The translations under genes and the position numbers were made by a program. This document shows, piece after piece, positions 27,101 through 62,606 of a DNA stretch of 64,000 nt; position 1 is the stretch's first letter; every line of letters starts with the position of its first letter. This DNA comes from Bugula neritina (Eukaryota > Animalia > Bryozoa): the NCBI GenBank assembly GCA_964035545.1, contig OZ037769.1, positions 14,786,633 to 14,850,632 of the forward strand, read 5' to 3'. Under the pieces are notes generated by a model that ran no database searches, had not been told where the DNA came from, and saw only the letters and a program-made list of their open reading frames with translations.

Positions 27101-30100
27101 GATAGTTTTTTCTGATAATTAATGAGTGTCGGGACTTGTTGGTAGGCCTTTGTCCTGACTGGCAAGACTGGGATCCTAACCAAGCTAAGAGGAATGCTAC
27201 TGAGGCTATGGATCTGGCAGAGAAGTACCTGGATGTGCCACAGGTTTGCCGTTTGTTGAGGTTGTATTCTGCAGCAGATGTAGTCTGTAGCAGACGTTTA
27301 TATAGCAGACATATGTGTAGCAGACGTATATATAGCAGACATATATATAGCAGACATATATATAGCAGACGTATATATAGCAGACGTATGTATAGCAGAC
27401 ATATATATATAGCAGACGTATATATAGCAGACATATATATATAGCAGACGTATATATAGCAGACATATATATAGCAGACGCATATATATCAGACGTATAT
27501 ATAGCAGACGTAGTCTGCAGCAGTTATAATATTTACTTTATGATTATACTAAGTGTAATTTATGTAATTGGTTGCCAATGTTTCTGCTGAGAGACTGTTA
27601 ATGTTGTTAACGGAATCTGATGTAGAAGTTTTCCAATAATCATCTTGTCATAGTGATATTCAAAACTTATTCTGTTAACCTTTTAACTTGACTCTCTTTA
27701 TGTCCATTGAGATGGGAGATTGTCACATGTGCATCGCTCTACCATATACTCTACCATACTCTACCGTACTCTAGCCTACTCTACCATACTCTACTCTACC
27801 CTACTCTACTCTACTCTACTCTACTCTACTCTACTCTACTCTACTCTACCCTACTCTACTCTACCCCACTGTACTCTACTCAAATCTACTCTACCATACT
27901 CTACCCTACTCTACCCTACTCTACAGTACTCTACCGTATACTCTACCCTACTCTACTCTACCATCCTCTACGATATACTCAGAGAAAGAAACTGAAGTTA
28001 TAAATTTTTCCAGTTGTTCAATGTGTTGTATCTTCCTCTGTTAGCTGATAAAACCAGAAGAGATGGTAAACCCGAAGGTGGACGAGCAGTCTATGATGAC
28101 GTACCTCTCACAGTTCCCCAATGCTAAACTCACTCCTCAAGCACCGAGCAAACCCAAGACAAACGCTGCCAGAGTCAGAGCTTATGGTCCTGGTCAGTAT
28201 TTCTTTTATTTTATCTTCTGAAGATGTGTTTTTTTAATTTTTTTGTTTCAGCTTTTGATATCTCTTTACTTGATGTAATACAGTATTGTGAGGGCAAAGG
28301 TTATAGACCTATTGACGGAGTAGCTATATTTAACCTGTAAAAATAATTTTGTCAAACAATTCAATATCTTCAACTGTAGCATTTTTGTAGGTGTTTTTCA
28401 TTAACCTTTTTTATTCTGAGGGCGTCACACCTAACATTTCATATTTAGTTTTTTATTATTAACATAAAATTGGAGATTTTTATTTCAATAGAGTTACATA
28501 GCTGGATTGTGTTTATGATGAGTTTCAAGTGAAATGATTATATAACATTTCTTGCTCAGGGCTTGAGCCGCAGGGTAACTGTATCGGTCGTCCTGCCAAC
28601 TTTAAGATTGAGACTTTCGCTGCCGGGAAGGGCGAGCCACTGGTTCTGGTGAAGAACCCTCGTGGTCAGCCCGAACGTGTAAGTGACGCCTGCAGACGTC
28701 AGCTAGCAGCGACTGTCGACAGCGGCTGTCGTTGTGTGTGTGTTTTGTAGAACTGTGCTGTTAACTGAGTCATGGGAATGCAGCTGTTGCATCATGTCTA
28801 CAAAGTATTCCGGAATGTCTCTGGTCTACTAATCTTTATGGTTGTTATACTAATAGATTAAGCATGTGTTATGTTTTCACAATATCCCCAACATTCATAC
28901 TGTATTAAGACATGGGTGGCTAAAGTAAAATCAGTTCCAGTTATTTCCTTTTTAACTTTTTTGCAGGGTCAAGCTGTATAGGTTGTTTATTTAAAGACAA
29001 ATAATTTTTTAAAAAAAGGAAAGAGTATCTATAAAAATTTACGTATATGTTTCTTGACACAGTGTCATGAGTACATTGTTTTAAATGTGGTTTAATTTTA
29101 TACAATTTTTCGGAAGACTTTGGGTTTGTGGCTACTTTACAAAATTCTTCTTTTGTATCTGTTAGCTTGTGAACCTTGTGTTACTCGTTGTGTTATACTC
29201 TCTCTGCATGACAATGTGTCTGTTTACTAGGATTGATGGCTAACGGTGTGATTGTGGATACGTTTGCCTATTTTTATATTGAAACCTTTGAGGCTGGCAT
29301 TGGGCCAATAGCTGTGGGAGTTTATAGCCCCAGTGGTCAACCCGAGCAGGTAATATTGTTACTATTCTGCTAGAAGCATGTTAACTAATATTTACACTAG
29401 ATCTACAGTAAATTGATGTTTAAGGTTTATGCTAGTATCTATAATTTTATGGCATGCAGTCCTTTACCTCTTTGCATGTGTTGAACTATCTTGTGAGATT
29501 CATGTTAACCGTGAAAGCTCGGATACACTTACTGAAAATGAAATGGAAATAATTGAAATATTACCAAAAAACTTCCAACTGACTGTAAAGCAGAAGCCTT
29601 GGAATCATTAGAGAAGGTTTATTTCTGTCAGAAAAAAGTGTTTTGGTTTTCCAAGTTTAAATACTGCAGTAAATCTTGTCACAAGTTTGATTGGGCAACT
29701 GCAATTCTAGTAAATATGAACATTTGCTAATGTTTTCTTCCGCATTAACCTACCAAGTATGTTCCAACACTTTAGGATTCAAATATTACATTATATGGAT
29801 TTTCATTTTGACAGGAGAATACAATTCTAAATATTCAAGCTTTCTGCTTTATTGGTGCTTTGTAAAAAAATAGTACCAATTTAAATGTTCACTCAATACT
29901 TTAGTAAACTTTAGGCGTTTTATTTATTCTTAGTTTGTACGTTTGCAATGTAACACTCATATGTAGCATTTGGACATAGTGCTGTATTTATACACATGTC
30001 TGTATGTTTTTCAGTGCGACGTGGTGTTTAATAATGACAGAAATCTAACCTACGCTTGTCAGTATGTACCTACCATGGAAGGCGAATATACAGTAAGTGT

Positions 30101-33100: not shown

Positions 33101-36100
33101 CTGTGAATTTTCACTTATATGAAAGTTATTTAGATTGCAATCATCATAATTTAAAAAATCAGTTGCGGGAGAAAACCACTGCTGTACAGCATTTAATATT
33201 GGTTTGTGGTGCAACCCTTTGCCTAATAATGACGTAGAACTTGCTAACAAATAGTTTATCAATTTGATAATAGCAAATTTCAAAACAATTTGGTGAAAAA
33301 AGTCACTTTGATACAATATTTAGTATTGATTTGTGGTGCAACCCTGTTGCTAATGATGTAGTTGCTATCCAATTGAACATATTTAGAGAAACATAGGAGA
33401 AACACAGGGTGAAACATAAATTATCGAGGCAGGAGTTTTCCAAATACTTCTTTTACAGAATTTGCATTCAATCCATCTTTTGTGTTTTAAAACTTCACAT
33501 TTTCTGACTAAAATTTAATCATTCTGCGAGCCTGTTATGCAAGCTGCTGATTGGACCGCTAGTAGATTAGTTGCTATTGAAACAAATCAACTGCTGTTGC
33601 TAAGTAAAGCACTAAACTAATGCATTGTGGGAACTGTAGGTCGAGAAGAGCCATTGAGCTTCAAGCCAGTAGATGCCAACACATATGAGACAGCCTATGT
33701 ACCCAAACAGCCTGGGATCTACACTATCAATCTCAAGTATGGCACGGGACATATTCAGAAGAGCCCATTCAAGGTAAGCTATATCACTAGTCTGCCAACG
33801 CTAAATATGGAAATGTTTTTCAACTAAAGCAAATGGTGTGGAGTTTTGTTGAATCGTTATTCATTTCAACTGGCGTTGTCTGAGTTTAACAAATAGTTAT
33901 TCTGAGATAGTTTTGCCTGACAAAATCTGGCGGCCATTTTTCACAGGCTGACAGGAAGATAGGATCTGAGTTTATGGCTCACAACACATTAGAAATTGTG
34001 GATATTATCTGTGATTTGTGTGTTTATCAGCGCTGAGTGAACTGTTGAGTGTTTCTTGTAGGTAAATATTGGTCCCCACAAGGAGAGTAACATCAGAGCC
34101 TATGGTCCTGGGCTAGAAGGTGGTATAGCCAATAAACCAGCTGATTTTGTTGTGGAGACTAACGGCGAAGTCGGAGCTCTGGGTTTCGCCATTGAAGGTT
34201 TGTTCATTGTTCTGCTGATGGCTCATTTATCAAGAAATCTTAAATAATTTGGCTTAATTAGCCCGAGTGAATATAAGTAATATTAATAACTACACAGGAG
34301 AACTAAGATATTCAACATTTGCGTGCGATGTGTGTTCCAGGGCCATCCCAGGCTAAGATAGACTGTGTAGACCAAGGAGATGGTTCTGCAGACGTTAGTT
34401 ACTTGCCTACAATAGCAGGAGAATACGCCGTGCATGTTCTCTGTGACAATGAAGATATACCAAAGTCTCCCTTCATGGCACAGATTGGTCCAGCTACCCG
34501 GGAATTCAACCCAGCTCAGGTGAGTTCTAACTCAGCTCAGGTAAGTTCTAACTCAGCTTAGGTGAGTTCTAACCTAGCTTAGGTGAGTTCTAACCCAGCT
34601 CTGGTGTCTGTGTTGGTGCACTATAAGGTTACTACACATTGTTTTACTCTCTGAAGCTGCTATTTACAGTAACCGCAACAATCAAACATACCAACTATGT
34701 TTTCTAAATGTTCTAGTGACTTCCAATACCATCTGCTATCAATGGGTAATGTAAATATTTTGTTAAAATTTGATTTTGCCTCAACAGTGAATAGCAAGAT
34801 TTGAAAAAATAAGAATTTTCCAGCTTTCAATGAATTCATCGACTTCCACAATCTATTTTATATTTGATATTACAGTCCGTATCACTGTGACTTTGATCTC
34901 TGTGTTGATTAAATCACACTCTTGTTGACTAAGCAACTTTACCTCCCACTCTGTGCCAACTGGCACTTCCCGTGAGTCATGTTTCTAGTCACACGTCTGC
35001 GAATGACTCATCCTGTATACTTCAGGTTATAGCCTTTGGACCTGGCTTAGAGAAACACGGAGTGGTGCAAAACAAATGGGCCCAGTTTACAGTTGACACT
35101 CGTGCTGCTGGCCGGGCCCCTCTCAAGGTCTACTGTGAAGATGCCGAAGGTAGAGCTCTATATAATGTTGTACTGCAAAAAAGTCATAGTTTTATAATCG
35201 AGTGATGATTGCATTTGAAACAAAAATAAAGTAATATTTTTTTTTGGAATTATGACTTGTAGGTCAGCAGGTTAACATCCAGGTCAAGGACAACCGAGAT
35301 GGTACATTCAGTTGCCAGTATCTGCCTAAGAAGCCGATAAAGCACACTATTATCATATCGTATGGCGGGGTGAACATCCCCAAGAGTCCCTACAGGGTAC
35401 ATTGCTCTATATTCTATTCTCATATCTATAGTTCATTTCTATAGCATCCTGTCTATTTATTACTTAATGCCGTAGTTCCTTAGTTTGTTTATATAAACCT
35501 CATCTATAGCTCCATGGTCTATTATTAGAGCTCCTATGTATTACTTTGCCAACTTATTGCTATAGCTTCTATCTGTTGCTTACTATTCTATGTTTATGGG
35601 TTCTAAACTGTGCCATATAAACTCATATATATTCTTTTTGCTGCATGTATTATTGGACTATAAGTTTAAGTATTTGTGATTTATTGATGCAACGTACTGT
35701 ACCGAGTACAACAAAATATATTTTACAATGTATCAAAAACAAGATTTCAAGAAATAGCATGAAAGTATCACATACTTTTTTCATGATGTTTTCACACTTT
35801 TACTTTCTTACAACACAGAGCTCATTCTTCTGTTGTTATACAGATCTCTATGCTTTAGGCTCAGTAGATCTCAACCTTATTAATTATTTAAAACGTGATG
35901 AACAACCAATGACCTTCAATAAAACAACCACCTTGTTTCTCACCTGAGACCCGGTGTTTACACAGGTATATGTTCAAGAGCCCAGCAGGCCAGAGAACGT
36001 CAAGGTATACGGACCCGGAGTCGACGGCCCCGTCAAAACCTTCCAACCCACCCACTTCTTTGTGGACTGCTCTGAGGCCGGGCCAGGAGACGTGGCCATC

Positions 36101-39100
36101 TCTCTGTGTGACGAGAGAGGACTGGACGTACCCGTAGAGGCTGCCGACAACGGGGAGGGTCTCTTTAGGTGAGTGTGTCGGCATCAACATGTTCAGCAGC
36201 AAACATATATTGTGCTTTGTTGTTACTTGGGGACAGCATTCGCATTTAATCTACTAGTTGCGTTTGTTTCACATTTTTAAACAGTGCTTATCATATCTCT
36301 GGTAGCAAATTAGATGAAAAAAGAAAATTAGAAGTATCGGGTGTTTCATATTTTACTGTAAGATTATTTGTGTGAATGACTTAAACTTGATGATGAATAC
36401 AAATTAGAATATGCAAAAGAATGATGATTTGACAATTACGTGCCCAGAGAAACAAAAACCAGGCTCAATCTAACTTATTGATATCATAACTCAGCGTGCT
36501 CTTTGAGTATTCATCATATTTTTGGAAATGTGTATCATGTTAGTTTAAATAATTGGATTGCGTTTAAATTTCAGGATTGAGTACGAGCCAAAGTCAGTAG
36601 GGATGTATACTGCCAATATACTCTTTGCTGACCAGGAGATACCAACCAGTCCTTACAAGATCAATGTGGAGCCCAACATTGATGTCAGTAAGATCAAGGT
36701 GGTGGGACTGGAACCACGTAAGTCTAAACTGTATTTGTGATCAGCTAGTATTAATGACGTTCCCTCCTACAGACTTGTGTAATGTTATTAGAAAAACATT
36801 TAGGGTTGTTTTTAAGGAAATTTGCTGTGGAATGAAATGCCTACCCCATTCTAAATCAAGCTTTTAGTTGGCAATAAAAGAATGAATATTGGATTCTGAA
36901 GCAATAGGCCCTTACTAATCTACCAATGCAATGATGTAATTTCCTGTCCCGATAACCAAACAGTGTTGAAGTGATGGAGTTAGCCCCCTCCCCAAGTATT
37001 GGTGACCCTAGCACCACTAGTGTGATTTACCACTTTAACTGCAGTTGCATTCTAAATACTATAAATTCTATATACTAGCCTATTGTGTGATGGTTTACTA
37101 CACATTTGATGCTGTGAAACATCACCACCTTTAGATTTAATTAGATTTAGTGAGTCATTTTGAATACAGAATGATACACTTCCTGTTTGCATTTCATTGG
37201 TCATGTGTACAGTGACATCATCATTGAGTCGTACTGACCTGTATTACAGGGAATCTTTCTCGCAGTCATCAAATATAATTTACTTCTGCTTTCTTTCATC
37301 TCTTGTCACAAGAAACTAGCATTTAGCATCTGGAATCTGGGTCATACTTGTTGTCCTGGTCATTCAGAGAGCTGACTAGTAATCAATGCTCAATTATCAT
37401 AGTTCCTCTTAACCACAACTCCTCAATTTATCAACTAGAAATCCCGATCGATGTCCCAACTGATTTTGTGATACAAGATGATGGGGCGGGAAAAGCTCCT
37501 GTCAGCGTGAGTGTGAGGTCACCCGCGGGTCGCACCGTGCTGCCAATGGTAGAGGAGCATCCTCAAGGTCATCATGTCACATTTATACCAAGAGAGCCCG
37601 GTCCTCATGATATCAGCATAGCGTACGGAGGGGTGAGCATCCCCTCTAGTCCGTACACCACCACTTGTGTTGAACCGGTCACAGAAGAACAGCCCATCCA
37701 GGCTCAAGAGAAAGCCAAGCCTGTTCAGGCCACTCAAATGCCTGTTCCTGACGCTGGCAAAGTCAAAGCATACGGCGATGGTTTGTACCGAGGCATAACC
37801 ACCAAACCAGCCGAGTTCACTATCGATACTCAAGAGGCGGGTCCGGGAGCACTCGGGCTCACCATTGAAGGTCCAATAGAAGCCAAGATGGAGGCCCGTG
37901 ACCTTGGAGACGGCACATGTCAGGTCACCTACTACCCAACTGAGGCTGGAGAATACACCATCAACATATTCTACTGCAATGAGCCGATACCCGGTGTGCC
38001 TTATGTGGCTAATATACAGTCGGGAGTTGTAATTGATGTTAGTGGGGTGACTGCCTACGGCCCGGGACTGCAGCCAAATGGTATGGAACTGTGGTCTGCT
38101 ATGCATGGTTTCCTGTCGGTTCTGTTTGATGCATGTTTGTTTGATGCTCTACATGTCCTGAATTGACTTGCATGCCGTTGCTTGTCTGTACACCAACTCT
38201 AATGGACGAAGACTATAGTTCAAAGGGGAAGCCATGTTGCAATATTTGTATTAAATAACCGAGTTTTAATCGGAATAGCATGCTTTCTAGTTTGACTCTA
38301 ACTAACTTTTAGCTGCCATATTAGTTCTTTTCTGTGAGTTTGTTTTAGAAGCAAGCCGGGAAACTATCTGTATGTCTATGTACTGTTTCTGTTGCCATGA
38401 TCAAGTACATCTGCTAATTCTCTTTTGCCATTTTGAAGTCATTCCCCATACATTTACACACTCTCAGCAAAGCTCAAAGTCAAGCTATTTATAGCTCATA
38501 TTACTTTATCAGTGTGTTTAAAAAGGTTTAGTCTGTTCTTGTTCAATTTTCGTTCCGAATGCAGCATGTCTGTACATGTTCTCATTTATATTTACTGATC
38601 TACTTTCTAGTCCAAGTCTTATAGATCTATATTTAAAATTCACTTTTCATTTTCTAGTTGTGACTAAAATCAAATTGGGGATTCACCTCAGTTCTTTTTA
38701 TAAAACTTTTGTTCAATTGAATTTTTCTCAATTTAAATTAATGCACACAAATACAATAAAACTATCATTATGATAAAAGTGGCATATAATTGTGCTATAA
38801 AGGAGTTATTACCATTTTGCTGGAAAACCAGTTTAAATTATTACACTAAACATTATTTTGTACAAAATTTCTACTCTATACTGTTTCAGGAGTCTTCATG
38901 GACTCAACAACTGATTTCACCGTTGATGCTAGATCGGTGACACCCAGCTCTGCCGGGAAAGTAAGGGCCATAATCACCAACCCTTCTGGTACTAAGAATG
39001 ACACTCTGGTTACACCCAACGGGGACGGTACATACCACGTCTCCTACGCTCCTTCTGAGAAAGGTTGGTTTTACTGCTTTTTCTGGTCATATTGATGCTA

Positions 39101-42100
39101 GGACTACTATTGTTATGTAGCAGCTTATTTGCTGTTATACTAAAATAATTTGAATAACCAATGTGTTTGTTATTTTTTCTGTAACTAGCTCAATAGCATT
39201 ATGAACTCCTAGAATCTAGATAGTAAGTTGAAAGAAGCACCAATTATGATTTATTCTGTGTATTTTTATTATGTTAGCAAATTATTTTAAAATAAAGTTA
39301 ATGGTTTAGCAAAACATTTGAATCTCTGCATAACCTGTTTACACTCAGTCATGTGATCACTATTGTAGGACCACACAAGGTTGACGTCACCTATGAAAAC
39401 CTTCCCATACCCCAGAGTCCATTCTCAGTCAATGTGTCGCCTGGTAATGATCCTAACAGAGTGAAAGCCTATGGTCCTGGTCTGGAGAAGGGCATTACCA
39501 ACCAGCCCCAAACCTTTACTATTGAGACTAAAGGAGCTGGGCAAGGCAGTCTCTCATTGGCTGTTGAAGGTTAGATCTATCCTGTTTATTTTAGGTGGAA
39601 TATTCTAGAAAACAATCTATGTTTGTCTTATGCTGTCATTGAGCTCCATTTAACTAGTATTTTAGGAAGAAATTCTCATGTCTAGTTTTGAATTGATGGC
39701 ACTTATTTGTAGTTAATTGACTTAAACATGTTTCCCAGGCTAATCAAGCATTTTATTCCAAGTTTTGACTCAGTTATGCGCCTGATGTGACCATAAATAT
39801 TGCCCAAGTTAGTTGTCGGGTAACTCAACCTGAGCCCCTTATATTTTTCATTCTTAGGGCCGAGCAAGGCGGAAGTATCTTGTAAAGACAACCACGACGG
39901 GACATGCACTGTTGACTATCTGCCCACCAAGGCCGGTGACTATGACATCTCCATCAAGTTTGCTGATAAGAATATACCAGGTGAGCTTGCAGACTGACTT
40001 CAGACATTTCTCTTGCGGCGTTTTGGCCTGCAGTGGATGATCTTTTAACACACTGCCTTTCTGTGGTGTTATTATTGTTTCTTTTATAATGATATAATTA
40101 CAAGTGTGTTAGTTATGTATGCAAGTAGTATGTACTGTTGACATTTACTGTTGATATTTCCTGTTGACATTTACTGTTGAAGTGTACTGTTGACATAAAG
40201 GTTCTAACTCTAATTATTTAATATGATGGATAATACATAGCTTGGTAATAACTGTTTTCTCACGGCCATAGTTTAGAAATCCTCTCAAATACAACTTGGT
40301 TGTTCATTTTCTTTGAGGGATACAGCACAAATGCTTTAAAATATGTGTTTCGATACTAATTTATATTAGAAAACTCCACTACTTCTGCCCTCTAATGCAG
40401 TACCATGTGTATTACCATGGTGTATTATCTTCTGTAGATCTGCTTTGTGATACTTGCATATAACACTTGATCTCTACTTGCATCAATTATTAATATTTGC
40501 TTTGCACAGCTTTGTCACAGTTTGTTAAACTCTTGTCTCCCTCTATTAGGTTCACCGTTTAAAGTGCCTATTGAGGACGCCTTGGATCCTAGCAAGTGTC
40601 GCATGTATGGTCCAGGTCTGAATCCGGAGGGGGTGAGAGCCACCCTACCCGCCACGTTTACTGTGGATTGCACTGAGGCAGGAAAAGGTCCTTTGGAGGT
40701 AGGTTTAAGTACTTTCTTTTTATTTTTAAAGTGTTACTCTATAAGCAAGTTTTTTTGCTTATTATTTGATTGTTAATATCGACTGGATACAAATCTGATT
40801 GGATGTTTTATCAGGGATTTTGTGAGAATAGAATTGTTTATTTGCAATTCTTTTGTCAACATAAATACTCGTAACAGCTGCATATTATTTCCAATTTGTT
40901 GCGCGACTCTTTTTTATTAAAAGCTGCTGGGTTTGATTTTATTCATTTGGTGTTTAATACTATTATACAGTTAGAATTTATTTCATGTGAATCTAAACAA
41001 TTTTAATATGCATATTTTTGTAGCCAAGTTTTTCACTGTTTGATTCTTAAATTCATAGGTATTGTATGACGATGGGAGGGGTAACAAACGCCCCGCCGAA
41101 ACTCACCAAGTGCAACCTGGTGTCTATCAATGTACCTACTACCCTGCTGAAGAAGGCCTGTGTGAAATCACTGCCAAGTATGCAGGGAAAGACATCCCTG
41201 GCAGGTGAGTGCTTGCAGCTGTCACTCATATGTTCTGGAAATGTAGGTACAGGTGGTTGTTTTGTCAAGCTTTCATTTAGGAGTTGTGCAATAAACTCTT
41301 GTATAATTATTATGTTCTGTATGCTTAAAAGTTGATATTGTGTTTGTTTTAAGATTGCTATCTTCTTTGTATGGAGAATATATGTATAGTATGTATATTA
41401 TATGTATGCCATGCATGTGTATTGGGATTGAGTTTTAGAATAAAAGATTACTACTGTGTTGATAACTTGTTTCTTTGTGAATTGTATTGCTAGTATTTCT
41501 CACACATTATACTTGATATGATAATGTACAAGTATTAAAGTTGAAAGTCATGTTATTTAATTGATACATTCATAGTATTTGTATTTAGCCTATCACAAGC
41601 CATAGCCTCTGTTCTTATCTCTGATCAGAATGTCCAATCAAATTTTTATATGTTTTTTTTACAACTATTTTCGAAATTTTACTCAAATAATCTGCGACTG
41701 TTTTGTAGTCCAGTGAAGCAGAAGATATTGCCGGTGTTTGACCCTTCCAAGGTCGTTGTGAGTGGTCCCGGAGTTCAGAGCGGTATACCTGCCAGTCTGC
41801 CGACTTCCTTCCTTGTCGATACGACTGATGCCGGAGACGCTGACCTTGACATAGCCATACAGGTTTGTTGTTTGTGTATGCGTAGTTGCCGTGGTTACCA
41901 TGTGTGTTGTATATTATATTAGTTTTTGGTGCAATCTACCGTTACCAGAGTTACCATGTTTTTCAATTATATTAGTTGTTGGTGTATGTATAGTTACCGT
42001 GGTTACCACATGTTTTACATTAACTTAGTTGTTTGTGTATACATAGTTACTATGGTTACCACATGTCACCTCTACCTGCAGGCTCCGGACGGCACGTTCC

Positions 42101-45100: not shown

Positions 45101-48100
45101 ATGATGATAATAAATATGGTCTCTCTTGTCTATTGTTGTGGTCTCTACCTTTGTGCTGTTTACTAACATTTGACTATGGCTAGTCATATAAAGTCTATGC
45201 ATTTTAGTTTACAGTCATTGCGCTGACTCTGAGTGATAAACATCTCTTTTGCATGCCAACACTTCAGATAAATGCTAGTTTCTAAGTTTTGTTTTATCTT
45301 GGGGATTAGCATGTTCAGTCTTTTGATTAATTTTGTTACATTGGGTGAGTTATTTTTCGGAAAAGTCTGCCTTTGAATCAATACTCACTTGTCGGACTCA
45401 TAGTAATTTGACTTTTTCTTTATCATCTTCCTGTAATTGTTTATAAGGTTTTGCTGTTTTGTACAGTTAATAACAAAATGGTTTATTTATTGTCAGTCAA
45501 CTGCCGTGTGACTGCAATTCTTAACAGCTCATTTGATTAATTCAGGCTACACCTGAAGGTGAAGGTCAGGAATTCTCTCAGACAACGATTACGTCAGAAT
45601 ATCACTCTCAAAGTAGTCTGCCCACTATTACCACCGAGGTACAGCGAATTTGCTGCTGCTGCTGCTGTCAAATCCTCTTCCCTTCTTATAACTATTAGGT
45701 GCATGCTCTTTCACGGGATGAAATCTCCCCGACTTCCTCTTTTCTCATTAGCTATTCATTTTCATATTGAAAAGGATGATTTGCCTACTCTTAATGATCA
45801 TTTAGTTATCTCTTCTTTTGAACGCTGGAACTGTCTTTTAGCTTTGCTTGACTCAATTAACTTTCTGTTGCTAGCTACAAAAAGTTTCTTGCTCTGACTT
45901 GTGTTTATTTGCCTATGCTCTGCATCAGACATGGTTGATCTTTTCTTGCATCAAGTGATGTCAAATGATCATCTCATAATCATTTCTTGACATTTTCTAC
46001 AAATGTTTTACTTCAATGAAATTGGTGAATTATGCAATTTAAAACTGCTCGCAGGTCGACTCTCAGCGCCGAACAATCGTCACGGAGACTCACCGAACGT
46101 ACACTATCAACAGCAATGTGCCGCAGACGCCGCAAAACGTAATTATGTGTTACCTCATAGCTACTCTTCTGCACACGTCCTGTCGCTATGCTGTCTACAT
46201 GTTGCTATTGCTTTGTCACAATGTTGTGTATCAGTCCGCTATTGCTTTGTCACAATACTGTGTATCAGTCCGCTATTGCTTTGTCACAATACTGTGTATC
46301 AGTCCGCTATTGCTTTGTCACAACACTGTGTATCAGTCCGTTATTGCTTTGTCACAGTCACAATATTCTTCCTCATCTGATATTGCTGGACCACAGAGCT
46401 TTATGTTGGCGATTATTGCATTTTATGTCTTCCAATGATAACACCAATCCTTGCAATGGTTATGGTTAGTTTTAAGATATGCAAGTTTATGTTTGTTTTC
46501 TGTTCTATTGACGGAGGCTTCAGTACAGGCCTGGTGCTCTAACCTAGCATGAGTCCTCTATAAATTTAATGAGCTTCATTTGCTTCAAGACTTGTAATAT
46601 ATTATCGAGTAACAGCAAATAGCCCAACTAACTTCAAGGTTATCTCAAACCAGAGACTTCCTAATGGCGTAGAATAACTATTTGCTTATAATTATTTTTC
46701 ATTTATTTTGCTTTAAAATGATGTACCATCTAATATAATTGCCGATTGGCTCATGCAATTGCACAGTATCCAACCACGCTGCTTGTTGGCTTAGTCAAGA
46801 TAGTTTACTTTACTTTAGTTTTAATGCCCATTACAATTTTTTTAGTAATACTGGATAATATATGTCAGTTTATCTGTTCTCTGTTTACCAAGCATGCATA
46901 TGGTGTCATGTATATAGTCTGATGTATGTTGTCTGATGTATGTTGTCTGATGTATGTCGTCTGATGTATGTTGTCTGATGTATATTGTCTTATGCTGCTC
47001 ACAATGTATCTGTAAACTGTATTCAAATGTGTTCTTTTACAGCTATGCATGACCTACAATATCAGGGTATGTGTGCTTTTTATTCACTCATTCTTACTTT
47101 CCAGGTCTGCCAGGCTTTTTAACGCTCATTTGCTCTTGGAGGCTGAAGGGAATATTATTAGTATCGGCATTGATTTACTTTATGGTGTGATACAGTCTTA
47201 TTACACGTGTTCATCTTTAGACAAAACATTAAATTGTAGTACAGTTTACGTTATTAGTATATTTGATACAATTTAAGTTGGCACAGTAATGCTTTTAAGG
47301 CTTCTGCTTTAATTAAATGCCATGATTCCTGTTAAGAAAAACCAATGGCCAGACTTTAAAACTTGGGAACTCTTGCATTACAAAAAGTAAATAATTTTTT
47401 CTCTATTTTGTTTTTTTTTTCAATTAAAATGCTTCATGCCTTGCTAATTGCTAGATATATACGTGTTATATTCTTTCTATTGCCATCTATATTCTTCTAG
47501 GATAGTTGAAGGTGCATTTCTATAATGCGATCAGTCCCAACTTGTGTTTATGTTGATTCGGGGCTGGACACATTATAGAGACGTACATCATTTCAGTCTC
47601 ACTCAATCATGAGTGACTGTACCAGCCTGTGATCTACAGTGGCCTTCAACATCCTGCTGATCCATGTCACTAACTTCAGGGAGCACAACTCCTTCACCCA
47701 TAGCCCAAGTTCTATAACCTCTTCTGTTGTTTCTTTGTAGGCTGACTACATATCGGTTGACAGAGTAGATAGTAGTTATCAGGCTATGAAACAGTCTGCT
47801 CCCACCAACATGTTTCACCCAGTTGACTTTGTAATCCCTACTGGACCTGTCTTCAACTACACATCAGGTTGGCTGGTCATCAGTTGCATTCTAGATTATA
47901 CTAAATCTGATTCTAGATTAGACTGAATATGGTGATAGATTACACAGAATATGATAATAGATTATACTGAATTTCATCATAGATTACACAAATTTTTTGA
48001 TAGTTTTGATGATGGAATAGATGTGTATATATAGAAGAAAAAAACCTCACGCGACTTTATAGTCACTATCCCTGCGAAAAACCCCTGATGGAACAGGTTT

Positions 48101-51100
48101 TTGTTAAATCGGGCTAAGGACTTATTCATACGTGGCACAGGAGTAATTATGACTGGATGCTCTTCTTAACATCACCAATGGCCTTAGTGGAGTTTAAACC
48201 CATGAGTTTGTGCTTACCAGGCAAATGATCTAACCTCTACACCACGGCTGCTCCCTGCATATATAGAGAAAAAGACTATGATTACATAATGTGGATATTA
48301 TTTTTCTATTGATCTTGCTTAATGTGTTTAGACTCTCAGTCTATCTTAGTTTCCAATATTTGTAGCTAAAGTTGTTACGCCCTCTGGACACACACACCTA
48401 CCTGAAATAGTTGACAACGGAGATGGAAGTGTTACCATAAAGTACCAGCCTATAGAAACAGGCTTACACAATCTGCATGTGGCATACAACAACAAACCTA
48501 TCGAAGGTGTGTAGTAATAAGTTGATGCTGTGTGCTACATTTTTTTCTCCGGCACAAGTCATCGCTATGGTTACCAAACTGTTCTGTTTCCTGTGAGTGA
48601 AGCTGACGTAGTGGTTTCTTGACCTTGAACTTTCTGTAGTACATCCTGCAGCCAATCAGAACTGTTGTAGAATATTCTGTGGCCAATCAGCAATGCTGTA
48701 GTATATTCTGTGGCCAATCAGCAATGGATAATCAACTCTGATAAAAGAAAAGTTACTATTCTCTTATTCCCAACCTCAAAGAGCGAAGGCTAAAGACTAG
48801 TTTTAATTTGTCAACTTACTTCCGTAACTTACTTACTTTTCCATTACGCTACGGAAAACTCTTGGTGATTCTCTTTCTTTTCTCTTCTTATCCTTGATGT
48901 CAAAAATTTATCTCTTTGTCTAATGATTTATCAGATTGATATGTAATTCTCGGCAGGTGCGCAGCTTAACACAAACATTATCTGAAGAAGTATTTGTTGT
49001 GTTGCAGGTACTGCCCTGAAATACCATGTGGTTGGCACATATCACTCCCGATTGTGGTTCAAAGGTATTGTAAAACCAGAAATACAAGCTGCCCATTTCA
49101 CATCCACAACTCTCTCAGCTAGACCCAGTTACGCTCAGTTCCCATTCTAACTAATCCGGGGGCTTTTTAAAATTCCAGGCAATAGCTTTATTTCTGGCTT
49201 TTACAGTAGCTTATTTCGTTCCCACAGACCATATGATTTGGAATTTTCCTTTCTTTATTTGCCCTCACCTCCCCTCTTTCTCTGGTCATATGCTTTTCTA
49301 TATTCGCTGATTTTGCTGAAACTGAAAAGTTAGTTAGTCTGTGGTCCTATGTTTATAGGAAGTCCCTACCAGTTCTACGTAGATGCAGTTGACAGCGGCA
49401 TTGTGGCGGCGTATGGCCCAGGGCTAAGTTATGGAGTGGCCGGGGAACCATGCTCTTTCACCATAGACACTAAGAATGCTGGAGCTGGTATGTAATACTT
49501 CATCAAATAATTTCTGGTGGTTATAATAATTTTATCAACAAGGAGTTGTCTTTCCTTTAGTTTCAATAACTTGGTGTAATCTTTTTCGATTTTCTCAAAG
49601 GCAATGCAACTCCAATGTTTTAAATCAATCATTTCTACCTATTGAATGTTTTGTATTGCTACAACACTGTTAGCTAATATACGTCTTCTATGTAAAGGAA
49701 AGACAACTTTGTATTGTAAAGAATTTTCACCGTTTATTTACCAAAACATATGGCAAAAAGTAGACACAATAATACAAACCTGCCCTGTAATAGGTGGACT
49801 CAGTCTGGCTGTTGAAGGCCCGTCTAAGACTGAAATCAGTTGTCATGACAACCATGACGGCACATGCACTGTGACCTTCGTGCCGAGGGTCGCTGGCGAG
49901 TATCGAGCCTCGGTCAAGGTCAATGGGCAGCATATCCCGGGCTCTCCATTCTTGGTTAAAGTGCAGCCCAGACCAGGTTAGCTGCATGCTGCCACTGCGT
50001 GTCACGCTGCCACTGCGTGTCACGCTGCCACTGCGTGTCACGCTGCCGGGTGTCTGCTTGTTGTGCTGTCGGGTCTCTGCGTGTTTGGCTCCTTTTCCGG
50101 CTTTTAGCTTCTGTCAAAAATAGAGGTGACAATTCCTTACTCTAACACCAAAGAGTTAGGCGCTTTGTTCCTTTTACAGAGCTCAGTACTAATGAAATAT
50201 CCCTTCCAAGCCCAATTGCTTTGTTCATAGAAAAAATATACTGATTCTACTCCATTTTTTGTAAATTACTAAATTTAAAGCCTCATTCATGAAATCATGA
50301 TTTCGGGTCATTTAGTTTAAACTATAGAGACAGCAATATAGGAGGCTGGTTTGCAGTTCTCGCGCCAAGTGATATATAGCCTGCCTTCTGTTGCTAAACA
50401 AAGGTAGTGCCACATCTCTGAAGAAACTGAGGAATGACATGTAATTACAAGTCTATAATCTCATTCCTGTTGGTGTAAGGAATGAGTCCGTGTGTTGTGA
50501 AGTTTTAGCATGCTGCATGGTTTGATTGGTTGCAGGTGCATTATCCCTGGCTATTGAAGGCCCTAGCAGAGTTGATATTACCTGCGATGACAATAAGCGT
50601 GGACTATGCAGAGTTTGCTATATTACTCAAGCCGAGGGAGAATATCACGTCATCATAAAATTTGATGGTCAGAATATTATCGGCAGTCCATTTAAGGCTC
50701 TGATATACGGTGGGTATCGGGCTAAGGTTTTGGTGATTTTATTTATGCTTTGTGGTTCTGTAGCATGCCGTGTGTATTTAACAAGAAACAATGCTGTAAT
50801 TTTACTAAATTTACGAATATTATTGTGAAATGTGTCGTTTACTATTTACAGCACTATAAAAGAGACATTAAACAGCATATGCTTGTTATTTTATTGTCAG
50901 TTATTTTGGAGATTTACAAATGTGGAGACTTATTTATTTTAATATTTTTCTCTATAAATTCTAATCAATTGTTTTTGAGCCTCCAACTGAAATGTTGCTT
51001 TGATGATGTTTAAATTATTTCGGGATATTTCACACCATATATTCTTTAATATGTATCTGAAAGCATTTCGAAAATTATAGTCGGTGAGTTTTGTATAATG

Positions 51101-54100
51101 GATGTGATTTAGGGGAGATCCAAGAGCGGTCCCAGTTCTCGATGGGTACAGCTAGTGAGTTCTCGCTAACCGTGAAAGAGTACGACATCAACACTCTTAC
51201 AGCAGATATCACGACTCCTTCTGGTAAATCTGAATCCTGTATTCTCAAGAAGCTGCCCAATGGTCACTTAGGTGAGTCATGAGCCATCAGATAGTGTGAG
51301 TCATGAGTCATCATAAAGTGCTAGTCATACACTAGAATGAGTCATCATATAGTGTTAGTCATACACTAGAATGAGTCATCATATAGTGTGAGTCATACGC
51401 TATAATGAGTCATCATATAGTGTTGGTCATACACTAGAGTGAGTCATCATATAGTATGAGTCATACACTAGAGTGAGTCATCATATAGTATGAGTCATAC
51501 ACTAGAGTGAGTCATCATATAGTGTTAGTCATACACTAGAGTGAGTCATTATATAGTATAAGTCATACACTAGAGTGAGTGAGTCCTGCTATGAAACATT
51601 TGTAAGTAGTAGTAGGAGTTATTTGAAGTTACAGACAGTCGATAGTTTCAGTCATTAAAATTAGTTATTCCTCTACATTATAGAACTGGCTGGAAGTAAA
51701 TAAAACTCTCACGCAAACTAATAAATAGGATTACTACAGATTCTGCTAGACATTTTATGTTCATACTGTACCCCAATAGAACAGCAATTTATCATCTATT
51801 CTAACTGTGTCGGCTGTCTAAATTATGAGTAGAAATTATGGTTTCATAATAAATTTTGCTTGCTTTAGCCAAATAGTTGAAATTGATAAACTATCCCTGT
51901 CCTGCTCACTCACTGGTCACTCTCCGAAACCTGTTTTATACAGCACAAGTTACTTAAATTATGCATTTATACTCCACTCAACTCTTAAAGTTGTCTACTC
52001 TTTACACAGGGATTTCGTTCACACCTCACGAGACTGGAGTTCATCTGGTCAACGTATACAAATACAGGCAGCATATTCCCGGCTCACCTTTCAAGATAGA
52101 TGTTTCGAGGAACGAGGTTGGCGATGCCAGTAAAGTCCGCGTGTACGGAGAAGGTCTCTACAGAGGTTATCTACATCAGATTACTGAGTTTGTAGTCGAC
52201 ACTCGTGATGCAGGTAATACTTTGGCTACCGAGTGTTACCCCTTTTAGAGAATAAACTTGTTAAAACAATTGATTTTTAGTACATTTTAGTCAAAGTTTT
52301 CTAAAAAGACTTATTGCTTCCATGAGTGTTTTTGTGTGGAGAAACAGAAATTCAAAGTACTTTTTGGAAGCTGATTTAAATTATTTATTCTGCACTCTTT
52401 TTCATTTGTGTGCCATGCAATTGCTTGCTTGACTTGCATATTGGACTTCTGCAATGCTTCTTTATGTTTTGCCCTTGTTGAATTTTGCTGTTAACTGAAT
52501 TATATTTTTACAAAAAATGAATGATGACTGCTTTATAGCTGTTTCACTCACTTTCCTTTATACTATTTTTTAAGTTTTGTATGAAATGGTTTAGAGTAGT
52601 GAAAATATCATTGAAAACTGGTTATTTTAATACAAAGTTTGTTTTAAAGTTCAATTCTCGAACAATTAGAAATTCTCAAAAATCTCATCTGAGCTAAGTT
52701 TTTCCTTTTCAAACACATATTATTTATTTTTGTTTTACCAAAGAATATTTTAGCCTATCTTTATGTATAAAGCTTTGTCTATGTTCCCCTTGTCAGAGAT
52801 GTGTTCTAATCTTTGTGGTTCTCATAGCATGGCATGGTGTGAATTAATTTTACTTTAATTCATTGCAGTTCCAAACAGGTTTGTATGAATTGCTGGTAAG
52901 TCACACAATTTATGTTTTCATTTTAATAAAGAGTTCTTGCTTTTGCAATAAAGCATTTCCAAAGGTTTTTCCACAAAAAAAAACTGTCATTCAGTTAGTG
53001 CGAAAAATTCAACATAGAAGAGCTTTTTCATAAATTATAATCTTAAAAGTACAACCACCACGAAAGCAAATCTTTTGTAAAAGGTAAAGCTCTTTTGATA
53101 ACTCTCAGAGTTATCTTCTCTCAAACCATATAACTGGGAAAGATAATTACTTTGAACAATTTTTTTTTTAAAAGTTCTGAAAAAATAATGATACCCATGC
53201 CATATAAATTAAAAATCGCACACCTTTCAAACTGCAACTGAGCATTTCTATCTAGATATATGCATACAGAATTGATCTAAAATATCGTGACCACGCAGTA
53301 CTTTAATGGACTTTGAAATCTATAACATTGCGTCAGTAACTTTGCCTTCACAGAGCTGGTCAATAATATATAAAAGCTTGCAAATAAAACAAGTACTTTT
53401 TAGTCAACCCAAAAGGTGTTTATTTTACTACCTTCTATCTACTGGAGATTTCTATGTATTCTTAATTTATTATTTACCACTCATAGCTCGTATAACCTAT
53501 TCATAGTTCAACCTATTTATAGTAAGGTTAGCAGACCAATTATAGTAAATTCATCTCAAGTAAACTTCAATGAAATATTTTAACAGATGAAAAAAGCTCC
53601 TAGCCATCTTCTGCCATCTACTGCGTTCTTTTATCTTCCTACTTCATGCTAGAACTGAGTTTAATCGTCATCTTTTTGTGCAATTCAAAAATATTTTATT
53701 GCAGAAGGTCAAAAATATTTTAAATAGTACATCATTATTTAATTTCATATGCTATTGAGCTTTGATATCGTGAAATTGGTATTTCAGATGGACATTTTAT
53801 AATGGTTGGTAGAATTGGGTCATATCAAGTGTTGTAGTGATAGGTAGTAAAAAGTTCTTGGTGGCAGCAGATTGGTTATTAAAGAGAAGACAAGTCTTGT
53901 AAGGTTTAAATGTTTAACACTCACTCATTATATAACTCTAAAACTCATATTTAAGCTGTTACTGTTCCTCTACACATTACTTCTACCTTATCTTAGCTAA
54001 CTCAAGAGGTCTGCCCTGTAACGAGTAGACAATTACTTGTACAGGGTAGACAACTACAAGTATGCAGACTACAAAGTTTCCACTTTACCATTTAAGGTGT

Positions 54101-60100: not shown

Positions 60101-62606
60101 GATTTCAAGTTTTTATAACAATTAAGTGATATAACTTCATATACATTACAAGTGTCTATAGTATATATAATCTCAAACATCACTTTGCCATATACCAAGG
60201 GTTCAGCCAGCACAATTAGCTGTAATAGCTGATGTGTGTTATATTATACTGTAGCTGTATTCTATACACAAACAGTGTGTTTGTAATGAACATGTAGGAT
60301 GAAACTAACAATCATATCATAACCACTGCAGCTAATAAATAACCACTTACTGCTTGTTATCTCAACAAGGTGTAGGCAAACCATACTAATTATTATATCT
60401 GTTTCTTACCTGCATATTTCTTTTAATTAGTTACAGACATGGTTTATATTGGTAGCGCTGCCTACTTAAATGCTGCCTTAAATCTTTGTGGTATTGGCTT
60501 AAGTTGTTGAAAGGTAGAACGCTATAAGTGTAAAGGCTTGCAGATGGCAACATATTAGCTCAAAACCTCTCAGTTTACAAAGGTGTTTTCACCATTCCCC
60601 AAATTAGAAAAAGCAACATTTTTTTTAAATTAGGAAACCTTAAAATATTAAATTTTAAATATTTTTTCCTCTATGCCCCTCACCCATTTGATAATCTAAA
60701 AATATACTAGTCTCAGCTTAAGTTGTTTCAAATGCTGAATAAATATTTAATTTTAGTTCCATTAACACTTTTACAAGACTATATTGGAGTAAAATATAGA
60801 CATAGTATCCTATAATCGGTTTAAGTTCACCTGCTAGATTGAAATTCTGACCATGTGCCAAGTCCTTTAGGTGTTTCAAGGCAAACAAATTCCTAATAAT
60901 CAATTTTTGAATTCCATCTCAAGTGGGCTTGAGTCAAATCCGAACGAGGTAATCTCAACTGGCACCTCACCTGTAGTAAAATCTTCTATTTTAAACATCC
61001 TTTGAGTGGGAAAGTATTTTTATGTTTGATTCAATTTTTAAAACCCCAAGACTGTCTAATCTACTGATTGTACAGCCCCTTCCGCGCAGACAAAAGTTAA
61101 CTCTTACGCAATTAGTAGACCACATGTGCTCCCACCTGGGCTATGGCTCACATATGCGTACAGGAATGTGCAGAGAGACTCATGTAAAGTTACATTCTGT
61201 TTTGATGTGCTATTTCTGTAACATTTCTCTGGTCTGCACTCGTCTAGCCCAAGTCTTTACCTGCTTTCAATGTAGTGTCTGGGATGTTAAGCAAGATGAA
61301 TACAGTTGGTACTGTTTAGTGTGATAAAATGGAAACATTCCTTTATAAAATAGTTGCTCAAGTTTATTAATGGCAATAAAACTAATATTTCAACAACTGT
61401 TGCCGTTTTAGGGCAAGAAAATTATGGATATATATTTAGCATTAGGGGTATAAATATATACGTAAGAAACTGTAAATGGCAAATTAGAATATATTTTGCT
61501 CTATAGATTTTTTATGGATCAATTAGGTAGTGTCAGTGTTCCTGCATTTTCCTCAAAACTAAAAAAAATTCTCGCTCCACATTGCCAAGGTATTCAGCTT
61601 CAATTCATTTTTATAATAATAGTTGTATTAAGGTATAGTTTTACATGACCTACATCTACTTACATGTTGATGAGTTCGAAGTTTCTCTGCCACGGCAGGC
61701 AATTCATAAATTTGCTACTTTCTGTTGACAGGCAGCCCATTCAACTGTAAGATTGGTGGAGTGACCACCAATAAGGAAGAGTCTATCGTCTCTCGAACTG
61801 TCAAGGTTGTAGAGACGACACATGTGGGCAGTGTCTGTGAGCTCGTGCTCAAAGTGCCAGGTGAGTTGTGGTGCTCAGGCTAGGTTGTTAGTTATATATG
61901 AGTTCCTTATCTAGCCTGCGGTCTTATCAAATATCTAGCAAAGGCACAAATGCTTGACTGGTGAAAATGTTTTTTTGTCATGATTTTTGTAACTTGCTAT
62001 TTTAATAAGATATTACAATAAATTTATCTACATATGTCTTTTTCTGATAATTTTTCTGTTTATGGTTGATGATAGTTGAAATTGTTTAACCTACCTTTTA
62101 GTTGTAAATTTCAACAGAAATTCTGTAAGGTGAAGTTGTGCCCACATCTCTGTGCCAAAAATTTTCTTCTTTTTCCAAACAATTCACTTTACTAGGAGTT
62201 GCTTTCTCGGTCTATATAGATGATTAATTTGCATTATTTCACTAGTGATTTCTCACAGGCTAATCTGCTATGACATTTAGACCTCATGTATTTGACCTCT
62301 AGGCCTGATGTCGTCTGCTAATTGCCAATAAGGGGCGAAGCTAATCATAGCCTTATTTCTATTTGACAGGTTCAGACCCGATGGACATGGTCGCCTCCGT
62401 AACGTCGCCCGAGGGCAAGACTGAGCTCTGCGACATAGTAGATCAATCAGATGATCATTATACTATTAAGTTTAGTCCCAAGGAAATGGGCGTTCATATT
62501 ATTTGTGTTAAACATAAGGGACTGCATATCCCGGGCAGTCCATTTCAGTTTACTGTTGGACCCATAGTTGAAGGAGGGGCGCATAAAGTGCATGCCAATG
62601 GCGACG
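24197..62606 (+). CDS. FLNA: Filamin (filamin-A/cheerio-like): CH1-CH2 actin-binding domain, 13 Ig repeats, long hinge, then equivalents of vertebrate Ig16-Ig21; 3' end outside the window
   Basis: Hallmarks: [63 protein letters not shown], and repeated AYGPG...GSPF Ig units. Exons: 24175-24352, 26191-26377, 26681-26941, 27146-27243, 28045-28192, 28560-28678 or 29231-29349, 30015-30092, 30577-30739, 31475-31675, 32168-32305, 33640-33773, 34062-34197, 34341-34519, 35026-35149, 35263-35396, 35966-36168, 36575-36717, 37439-38080, 38890-39063, 39369-39569, 39858-39980, 40550-40698, 41059-41204, 41709-41862, 42082-42271, 42467-42643, 42900-42964, 43491-44828, 45546-45638, 46055-46138, 47741-47867, 48366-48506, 49359-49487, 49794-49976 or 50536-50709, 51113-51271, 52010-52213, 59191-59343, 61732-61860, 62370-62606. 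All are GT-AG and phase-compatible. The symbol denotes the family, not 1:1 orthology. Confidence 0.97.
27284..27515. repeat. Minisatellite, ~16-bp unit TAGCAGAC(A/G)TATATA
   Basis: About 13 tandem copies with variable TA length. Confidence 0.92.
27738..27978. repeat. (CTACT)n pentanucleotide microsatellite
   Basis: Directly visible; degenerate at the edges. Confidence 0.93.
28560..28678 (+). CDS. FLNA: Filamin Ig1 exon variant A (mutually exclusive pair 1)
   Basis: 119 nt, phase 1 to 0; [40 protein letters not shown]. Confidence 0.9.
29231..29349 (+). CDS. FLNA: Filamin Ig1 exon variant B (mutually exclusive pair 1)
   Basis: 119 nt, phase 1 to 0, TTTACTAG|...CAG|GTAATA; [40 protein letters not shown], 19/40 identical to variant A. 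Confidence 0.85.
32971..32988 (+). CDS. FLNA: Candidate 18-nt filamin microexon (EVNEDP) in Ig3
   Basis: ATTGTTTTAG|AAGTGAACGAGGATCCTG|GTAAGT; phase 1-1 like the host intron; no stop. Confidence 0.65.
34508..34606 (+). repeat. 21-bp tandem repeat spanning an exon-intron junction (duplicated 5' splice sites)
   Basis: Unit AACYCAGCTYAG|GTRAGTTCT, ~4.7 copies. Confidence 0.9.
43491..44828 (+). CDS. FLNA: Filamin hinge exon, 446 aa, Q/N/P/Y-rich with ([10 protein letters not shown])n repeats
   Basis: GTATCAG|GCT...GAG|GTATAG; 1338 nt, phase 0-0, open throughout; lies between the Ig15-like and Ig16-like repeats. Confidence 0.82.
43810..44370 (+). repeat. Coding 15/30-bp tandem repeat with 150-bp higher-order period
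   Basis: AACCAGCCCTACCAG / AATCAGCCCAATCAG units; the GGCCAGCCTTTCGCA variant recurs at 44031 and 44181. Confidence 0.93.
46204..46356. repeat. 34-bp minisatellite, ~4.5 copies
   Basis: Unit GCTATTGCTTTGTCACAATACTGTGTATCAGTCC. Confidence 0.92.
46917..46990. repeat. 14-bp tandem repeat, ~5 copies
   Basis: Unit GTCTGATGTATGTT. Confidence 0.88.
48036..48258 (-). mobile_element. tRNA-derived SINE, copy 2
   Basis: Reverse complement reads GCCGTGGTGTAGAGG...GGTTTAAACTCC...TTGGTGATGTTAAGAAGAGCATCCAGTCATAATTACTCCTGTGCC...GTGACTATAAA, followed by a T-rich tail. Candidate TSD ATATATAGA at 48027-48035 and 48259-48267. Confidence 0.85.
49794..49976 (+). CDS. FLNA: Filamin Ig17-equivalent exon variant A (mutually exclusive pair 2)
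   Basis: 183 nt, phase 1-1; [60 protein letters not shown]. Confidence 0.88.
49988..50047. repeat. 18-bp tandem repeat, ~3.3 copies
   Basis: Unit GCTGCCACTGCGTGTCAC. Confidence 0.88.
50536..50709 (+). CDS. FLNA: Filamin Ig17-equivalent exon variant B (mutually exclusive pair 2)
   Basis: 174 nt, phase 1-1; [57 protein letters not shown]. No A/B-strand exon lies between the two variants. Confidence 0.86.
51272..51585. repeat. 34-bp minisatellite (~8 copies) starting at a splice donor, rich in (G)TGAGTCA
   Basis: Unit GAGTCATCATATAGTGTTAGTCATACACTAGAAT. Confidence 0.92.
55921..56002. repeat. 82-nt near-perfect hairpin (~35-bp stem)
   Basis: GTGACTTTCACTGAACTTTGCTAGATGGAAAGGGG ... CCCCTTCCCATCTAACAAAGTACAGTGAAAGTCAC, 3 mismatches. 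Confidence 0.85.
57456..57522 (+). CDS. Candidate internal first exon for a short C-terminal filamin isoform ([22 protein letters not shown])
   Basis: AAAATGC start; GC-rich island in an AT-rich 7-kb intron; phase-1 donor G|GTACGA matches exon 59191; CCAAT ~130 nt upstream. Confidence 0.45.

Follow-up and report, generated by a model that had tools for sequence, protein, structure and literature searches.

Filamins are mechanosensing actin cross-linkers, in which the Ig17-21 region (Ig, immunoglobulin-like repeat) binds ligands via its C-D face. Within this family, splicing has been linked to Rbfox in human FLNB, where RBFOX1 and QKI control the optional hinge-1 (H1) exon, exon 30, by driving its skipping (PMC6103745). 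Proteins of the Rbfox family bind (U)GCAUG, a site invariant across metazoans, and repress an exon from its upstream flank but activate it from downstream (PMC2777236). This rule applies to mutually exclusive exons as well, namely those of egl-15 (5A/5B; C. elegans), α-actinin (NM/SM), and FGFR2 (IIIb/IIIc); there, (U)GCAUG is found upstream of the repressed or downstream of the included exon, often in multiple copies and retained between species, and the alternative exons provide different versions of a ligand-binding module (PMC2777236). The 64,000-nucleotide (nt) stretch of the bryozoan Bugula neritina genome analyzed here (contig OZ037769.1; "the window") carries on its + strand a filamin gene that shares these traits. 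It is rather probable that this gene makes at least four regulated splice choices, and that its (U)GCAUG motifs lie where the Rbfox rule predicts a coordinated switch; the choices concern two pairs of duplicated exons (E6a/E6b and E31a/E31b), an exon encoding two filamin repeats (E18), and a hinge-1 cassette. The Bugula gene differs from egl-15, α-actinin, and FGFR2 in being a filamin, in coming from a bryozoan, in being known from sequence alone, and in having one pair that is, in addition, enforced by the reading frame. It adds a well-supported new instance to a known type of splicing control and is neither a new kind nor a single-gene stand-in for the vertebrate paralogues.

A Pfam search of the window returned calponin-homology (CH) domains and many filamin repeats (PF00630). 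The CH domains are in + strand open frames between 26.2 and 28.2 kb, and the N-terminal tandem CH (PF00307) is encoded by exons at 26185-26970, collinear with residues 27-280 of oyster filamin. With the Bugula protein KAF6016647.1, Watersipora subatra filamin-A-like X1/X2 (XP_067932450/51), and Ostrea edulis filamin-A-like X18 as guides, a model of 43 coding exons was obtained, all of them bounded by GT-AG and together forming one open frame of 2,428 amino acids (aa); the joined model served as the reading-frame check, and database searches were done exon by exon. End-to-end collinear tblastn chains connect the gene with Ostrea edulis XP_056000448.1 and Watersipora XP_067932450.1, and KAF6016647.1 (GenBank, "FLNB [Bugula neritina]") aligns to it exon by exon. 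A profile search found no close full-length representative but pointed to the oyster and Watersipora proteins. Exons E1-E36 are located in the window (24194-64000, start codon near 24197) and E37-E43 0.4-3.8 kb past its end, up to 67760 in window numbering. A first-pass annotation of this DNA had placed the splicing system at 28560-62606 and had proposed candidate alternative ends. Position 28560 is the acceptor of E6a, with the start codon of the gene further upstream; no alternative ends were seen, 62606 being the donor of E36, after which the gene simply runs on. The same genome contains a second full-length filamin gene (contig C4, minus strand, about 9.27-9.31 Mb), which carries both exon pairs too. 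The proposal that one gene does by splicing what vertebrates do with FLNA/B/C therefore fails as stated. Compared exon by exon with Watersipora filamin, the C4 paralogue is 70-95% identical and the window gene 50-86%.

Exon pair 2 consists of E31a (49794-49976; 183 nt) and E31b (50536-50709; 174 nt), both in phase 1 and both on the + strand, as are all other parts of the gene described below. Each encodes the C-terminal half (strands C-G) of the repeat equivalent to Ig17. The two copies are intact, and E31b has a strong acceptor (score 13.5) and a donor scoring 8.3. The first copies of the window gene, the C4 paralogue, and the Watersipora locus have in common a GTTAG donor and an ending made of "KV" plus an extension, and the second copies an ending of the type "KFD...GSPF". 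In Watersipora, the RefSeq isoforms X1 and X2 differ in nothing but the two exons equivalent to this pair, of which each isoform contains one. Pair 2 is the counterpart of a choice annotated as mutually exclusive at the orthologous Watersipora site.

Exon pair 1 is made up of E6a (28560-28678) and E6b (29231-29349), again both in phase 1. E6a, which is the copy present in KAF6016647.1, encodes the N-terminal half of Ig repeat 1, and E6b has intact AG/GT borders and an intact frame. Both are 119 nt long, and because this is not a multiple of three, the use of both or of neither shifts the frame. The first copies group across genes (64-74% identity among a-type copies), E6a sharing 67% of its amino acids with that of the C4 paralogue and 64% with that of Watersipora, and the b-type copies of C4 and Watersipora are 79% identical to each other. 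The a-type looks derived because the oyster exon is nearest to the b-type. In the C4 paralogue and the Watersipora locus, both pairs are present and arranged likewise, their frames and AG/GT sites being intact, and the oyster locus contains single copies at both sites. The existence of two duplicated-exon pairs, as it had been proposed initially, was thereby borne out.

Sequence comparison with a second B. neritina assembly (GCA_010799875.2, contig VXIV02003495.1), which extends over the window as far as about 52.2 kb, gave 87% identity overall with many indels and about 16% divergence in introns; the two assemblies presumably represent different cryptic species, that is, a sibling lineage. 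Constitutive exons are 95.7% identical between the two, with the differences distributed 12/2/171 over the three codon positions and 174 synonymous versus 10 non-synonymous changed codons. The candidate alternative exons display the same pattern: five synonymous and no non-synonymous changes in E6a, three and one in E6b (115 of 119 nt identical), six and none in E31a, seven and one in E31b, and 23 and one in E18. All five are gapless in the sibling assembly and have conserved AG/GT splice sites. The pair exons are 95-97% identical, as opposed to about 84% for introns. Changes that are almost exclusively synonymous, the lack of gaps, and the retained splice sites indicate that neither copy of a pair is translated so rarely as to escape purifying selection, and this signature is the strongest evidence in the present analysis that the pairs are functional. 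In constitutive exon E25, the sibling draft appears to hold a single-base frameshift (deduced from the aberrant end of the gene model), which would account for a sibling filamin model that stops short at 1,457 aa and is spread over two genes.

All 11 TGCATG sites that had been listed at the outset are present on the + strand at their positions. Over the window as a whole, the motif is not enriched (46 observed vs. 45.5 expected). Its placement beside candidate exons is, however, non-random: TGCATG was found within 150 nt of four of the five candidate exons (E6b, E18, E31a, and E31b, with seven motifs) but of none of the 38 constitutive ones (Fisher 4e-5; Poisson 8e-6). The presumed enrichment over background thus exists next to the candidate exons and not at the scale of the gene or the window. 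One motif (29205-29210) precedes the acceptor of E6b by 25 nt and another one (29473) follows this exon at a distance of 125 nt. Three (38102-38174) are located at +23, +51, and +90 relative to the donor of E18. The short intron between the copies of pair 2 (motifs at 49983-50519) contains TGCATG at +8 of E31a (49983) and at -21 of E31b (50514), together with AGCATG at -28. Both other genes replicated this distribution, with GCATG near four of four candidate versus six of 18 constitutive exons in C4, and TGCATG near four of four versus five of 28 in Watersipora (p 0.0035). The antisense control was flat in C4 and Watersipora, as was the 6-mer control in the window gene; the 5-mer CATGC was also somewhat enriched near the candidate exons of the window gene, partly via its overlap with TGCATGC.

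The positions of the motifs are conserved as well. TGCATGA is found ahead of the b exon of pair 1 at -25 in the window gene, at -33 and -26 in C4, and at -41 and -34 in Watersipora, within introns that are otherwise unalignable. The introns equivalent to that of pair 2 are 122 nt long with two GCATG in C4 and 124 nt long with four GCATG in Watersipora. Past the donor of the cassette at the rod-extension site (see below), GCATG follows within 40 nt in all four loci compared (+23 in the window gene, +40 in C4, +19 in Watersipora, and +16 in the oyster Saccostrea), and none was found upstream of that cassette, over 200 nt for each of the three bryozoan genes and 250 nt for Saccostrea. Provided that the genes are independent, a rough estimate from the measured motif densities would put the probability of each such positional coincidence arising by chance at about 1e-5 to 1e-6. 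The sibling assembly has retained nine of the 11 TGCATG and all 11 GCATG cores, compared with 47% of intronic 6-mers and 52% of intronic 5-mers (p 0.02 and 8e-4, respectively) and with just three of nine other intronic sense or antisense sites. Among those retained are the GCATG core at 29205 near E6b and both TGCATG between E31a and E31b. Conservation of the exons in related genomes, which had been named as a way to check the idea, is therefore evident in that both pairs and their neighboring motifs recur in the paralogue, in Watersipora, and in the sibling assembly.

E18 (37439-38080; 642 nt, symmetric, phase 1-1) is the candidate cassette at what is here termed the rod-extension site, the junction of E17 with E19, and encodes two filamin repeats and a linker. 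Watersipora X1/X2 and the short oyster isoform lack this exon, and E17 is joined to E19 there in the same phase. Precisely at this E17|E19 junction, a single extra exon contributes about 680 aa to the long oyster isoforms, and a two-repeat cassette of 205 aa is inserted there in the nemertean Tubulanus. By analogy with these annotated cassettes and from its position, E18 may be skipped in the window gene; its acceptor is weak (score -0.8). The two-repeat cassette suggested earlier is thus present, symmetric, and located at an annotated optional-cassette site of oysters and the nemertean, though it could still be constitutive in Bugula. Giant open exons consisting of filamin repeats occupy the E17|E19 intron in Watersipora (35460-43181 of the locus; 7,722 nt) and in C4 (minus strand, 33929-38380 of the reverse-complemented locus; 4,452 nt), and the Watersipora stretch is also listed as a separate, nested gene call of 2,624 aa. 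Tandem donors, another feature of the initial proposal, were discarded: those following E18 (38107 and 38134) score 1.0 and 5.1, whereas the main donor reaches 7.2, and their use would introduce Cys/hydrophobic residues; those following E8 are weak too.

The fourth choice concerns the hinge. Intron 27 (42965-47740, phase 0) contains a 30-nt microexon (43491-43520, phase 0-0; acceptor 8.4, donor 4.7), which in position and motif matches AFPEEMMIDE of Watersipora, AVPEEELAIQE of C4, and the oyster cassette AVSPEEYEKYLEDQ. The latter is present or absent among the RefSeq isoforms of Ostrea edulis, and its exon exists in the Saccostrea locus as well. The microexon mentioned in the first-pass annotation came with no coordinates and could not be located; 43491-43520 is the only conserved one that was found. 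From the same acceptor, a longer exon can be read up to a donor at 44828 (43491-44828; 1,338 nt), encoding 446 aa rich in Q, N, P, and Y, and we consider that this long form is probably real. Its frame contains no stop codon, as against two and 20 in the other frames. The alternative, somewhat unlikely in our opinion, is that it is not an exon at all, that splicing retains the 30-nt microexon at most, and that 43521-44828 is an intronic, CA-rich minisatellite, stop-free for lack of T. A tandem array with a 15/30-bp unit indeed spans 43808-44381, T makes up just 15.5% of the sequence, another frame also stays open along part of the region, the donor scores just 5.9, and no search returned a homologue of the Q/N-rich exon; in addition, the sibling assembly has a +1 difference within a run of C at 44688, which disrupts the final 40 codons. 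However, in the non-repeat part (43521-43807), the differences from the sibling assembly are distributed 2/1/11 over the codon positions (p 7e-4), as expected for coding sequence, whereas six intron controls were flat, and the indels, apart from that +1 difference, add up to -111 nt, a multiple of three; the draft that contains the +1 difference also appears to break constitutive E25. On either side of the array, the non-repeat sequence lacks stops in the frame needed (P about 0.04 and 0.01), and TGCATG (44851-44856), retained in the sibling assembly, follows the donor of the long form by 23 nt; just past this motif, the alignment with the sibling collapses (62% identity, 35 gaps). An insert of comparable nature is annotated in the nemertean Lineus longissimus, the RefSeq isoform X3 of which (compared with X7) has 381 low-complexity residues rich in E, R, L, and Q (1539-1919) at the equivalent hinge-1 site. 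This Lineus insert opens with a motif of the type "A-I-P-x-E-x-Y", as do the hinge cassettes of oysters and bryozoans.

Two more hinge cassettes are candidates. H2 (45546-45638; 31 aa, Thr/Ser-rich, phase 0-0) has weak sites (4.8 and 4.1) and is 98% identical in the sibling assembly (91 of 93 nt), compared with 84-92% in most flanking 100-nt windows. H3 (46055-46138; 28 aa, phase 0-0; acceptor 7.7, donor 3.8) has a borderline third-position bias (0/1/5; p 0.018, 0.05 after correction). Neither of them, nor the C-terminus of the long hinge exon, has a counterpart in C4, Watersipora, or oyster. Three symmetric hinge exons had been predicted, and frame-compatible candidates exist at 43491-44828, 45546-45638, and 46055-46138, two of which (H2 and H3) lack a cross-species match. 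Within the same intron, 42965-43490 and 46139-47165 are 92-95% identical to the sibling assembly without codon periodicity (other introns about 84%); these stretches may be intronic regulatory sequence.

An exon encoding an Rbfox-type RNA-recognition motif (RRM), FGTILDVEIIFNERGSK, is located on contig C1 (17139480-17139530), its best matches in the PDB being RBFOX1, RBFOX2, and ASD-1 (E 7e-5). The 30 best RRM_1 loci of the genome included none that is Rbfox-like, and a first degenerate pattern did not match either; the exon was found with a second one. If the motifs in the filamin gene are bound by an Rbfox protein, the positional rule would have the following consequences. The choice between E6a and E6b, enforced by the frame, would exchange the N-terminal half of Ig repeat 1, adjacent to the actin-binding domain, and the motifs upstream of E6b would repress it in favor of E6a. 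The choice between E31a and E31b would swap strands C-G, and with them the ligand-binding face, of the Ig17-equivalent repeat; the motifs located between the two copies would activate E31a and repress E31b. Inclusion of E18, as opposed to its skipping, would lengthen the rod by two Ig repeats at a site where extension is ancient, and the hinge-1 cassette starting at 43491 would be used as the 10-aa microexon or, via the later donor, as the 446-aa Q/N-rich form; the motifs downstream of E18, and perhaps that downstream of the long hinge donor, would promote inclusion. Together, the motif layout and the position rule predict that cells expressing Rbfox, typically muscle and neurons, favor the longer E6a/E18/E31a filamin. 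The original idea of a combinatorial, RBFOX-marked splicing system in one filamin gene is thus retained for several independent sites with conserved adjacent UGCAUG and dropped for the tandem donors and the alternative ends. The figure of more than 100 isoforms given with it is a product of arithmetic.

A number of observations weigh against such a switch. Within the gene, TGCATG is not clearly enriched on the sense strand (20 vs. 13.8 ± 3.6; p about 0.07), the motif statistics rest on five exons, and some of the motifs in the short pair-2 intron were counted for both neighbors. Both lengths in pair 2, 183 and 174, are multiples of three, and exclusive use is not enforced by the frame in this pair. 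The second copies of the window gene are more diverged than constitutive exons (E6b and E31b are 44-49% identical to their counterparts in Watersipora and C4); E6b shares about 44% with both other b-types and 46% with E6a. E18 is included in the Bugula AUGUSTUS model, which was built with transcriptome hints, and could be constitutive in the window gene; Bugula entries in the protein databases comprise genomic open reading frame fragments and one AUGUSTUS model only, and a word search with E18 yielded nothing but such fragments. There is no GCATG near the hinge microexon of C4. Finally, the Bugula genome yielded a single Rbfox exon, and a search with Pfam Fox-1_C gave no match.

The exon-level evidence also fits a scenario in which the alternative exons are real but are chosen by other RNA-binding proteins, by competing RNA structures, or by splice-site strength, with GCAUG being conserved for another reason or bound by another protein. 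The link between motif and factor is itself predicted from sequence, the weak acceptors of E6b (4.7) and of E18 are such that splice-site competition could matter, and the broad conservation of the hinge intron (90-95% over long stretches) points to other elements being present. Nevertheless, we regard this scenario as unlikely: the same 5- or 6-mer recurs at equivalent positions in three genes, the introns of which cannot otherwise be aligned, and accompanies the oyster cassette too; the control on the antisense strand is flat; and (U)GCAUG is the site that has remained invariant for Rbfox across metazoans (PMC2777236). That the duplicated exons are relics in decay, absent from all transcripts, with TGCATG next to them by chance, would agree with the chance-level frequency of the motif in the window but is highly improbable and already contradicted, given that both copies have kept frame, length, and splice sites in three genes, that they change mostly synonymously at exon-like identity, and that the motif placement near them is significant and replicated.

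The coordinated Rbfox switch, the reading we favor, places the Bugula gene close to described systems. With FLNB exon 30 it shares an optional filamin hinge-1 exon linked to Rbfox, and the hinge cassette site is common to Bugula, Watersipora, oysters, and nemerteans. The Bugula cassette differs from the human one in being a 10-aa microexon with a possible low-complexity extension to 446 aa, and the motif evidence is weaker here than at the exon pairs, the C4 hinge being devoid of the motif. Like other invertebrate filamins (Ostrea, Mytilus, Branchiostoma, Tubulanus, Lineus, and Drosophila cheerio), the Bugula gene would produce many isoforms by means of optional rod repeats, a hinge cassette, and small cassettes. 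RefSeq isoform numbers reach X27 in Ostrea edulis, X33 in Mytilus edulis, and X48 in Branchiostoma (amphioxus hybrids), all of these being database predictions, and cheerio gives rise to at least 10 transcripts (PMC5521747). With respect to position, these filamins agree with Bugula at the E17|E19 and hinge cassettes, whereas exclusive pairs in Ig1 and Ig17 were seen in bryozoan genes only. A literature search returned nothing on mutually exclusive exons in filamins or on the RefSeq invertebrate isoforms. In the annelid Owenia fusiformis, CAH1784407.1 and CAH1784408.1 differ by a 43-aa substitution block (residues 231-273) at the equivalent of E5 (28045-28192 in the window), which has the appearance of mutually exclusive exons, here in another phylum and at another place in the gene. 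The C4 paralogue has the same two pairs, a TGCATG doublet ahead of the b exon of pair 1, and a cassette at the same rod site; it differs from the window gene in being closer to Watersipora filamin, in having a giant exon of 4,452 nt where the window gene has E18 (642 nt), and in its short hinge intron without the Q/N array.

The mechanism as such is textbook, and filamins with many isoforms are already visible in RefSeq for invertebrates. What the Bugula gene would add is that either/or exons rewriting the ligand-binding face of Ig17 and, beside the actin-binding domain, Ig1 would provide one gene with filamins that differ in partners and mechanics, and that the conserved UGCAUG layout represents a concrete wiring diagram in a little-studied phylum. 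The layout also hints at a regulation of rod length and hinge by Rbfox that long predates the case of vertebrate FLNB. Tentatively, and with more doubt than conviction, filamin and Rbfox may be viewed as an ancient regulatory pair: the rod-extension and hinge-1 cassettes would have been flanked by GCAUG before bryozoans and molluscs split, the hinge link persisting in human FLNB; bryozoans would then have added two Rbfox-switched pairs, and the window paralogue would have enlarged the hinge microexon to a 446-residue, Q/N-rich segment, prion-like or elastomeric and tissue-specific.

Of the features proposed initially, the "var-1-type" exon probably corresponds to E35 (61732-61860; 129 nt, symmetric), which encodes the end of the Ig19-equivalent repeat and the first strand of the Ig20-equivalent repeat. 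It is one among many symmetric phase-1 exons of the gene; nothing points to its being skipped, and no TGCATG was found beside it. About 11 kb before the start of the window, a neighboring gene (C5:14775655-14775852, minus strand) has an exon that contains an RRM and is not Rbfox-like. Tandem arrays are present in intron 4 at 27288-27512 and 27747-27961 (a 15-bp unit repeated 14.7 times and a TACTC unit repeated 43 times, respectively), and another one, with eight copies of a 34-bp unit, is located at 51304-51580, starting about 30 nt past the donor of E32.

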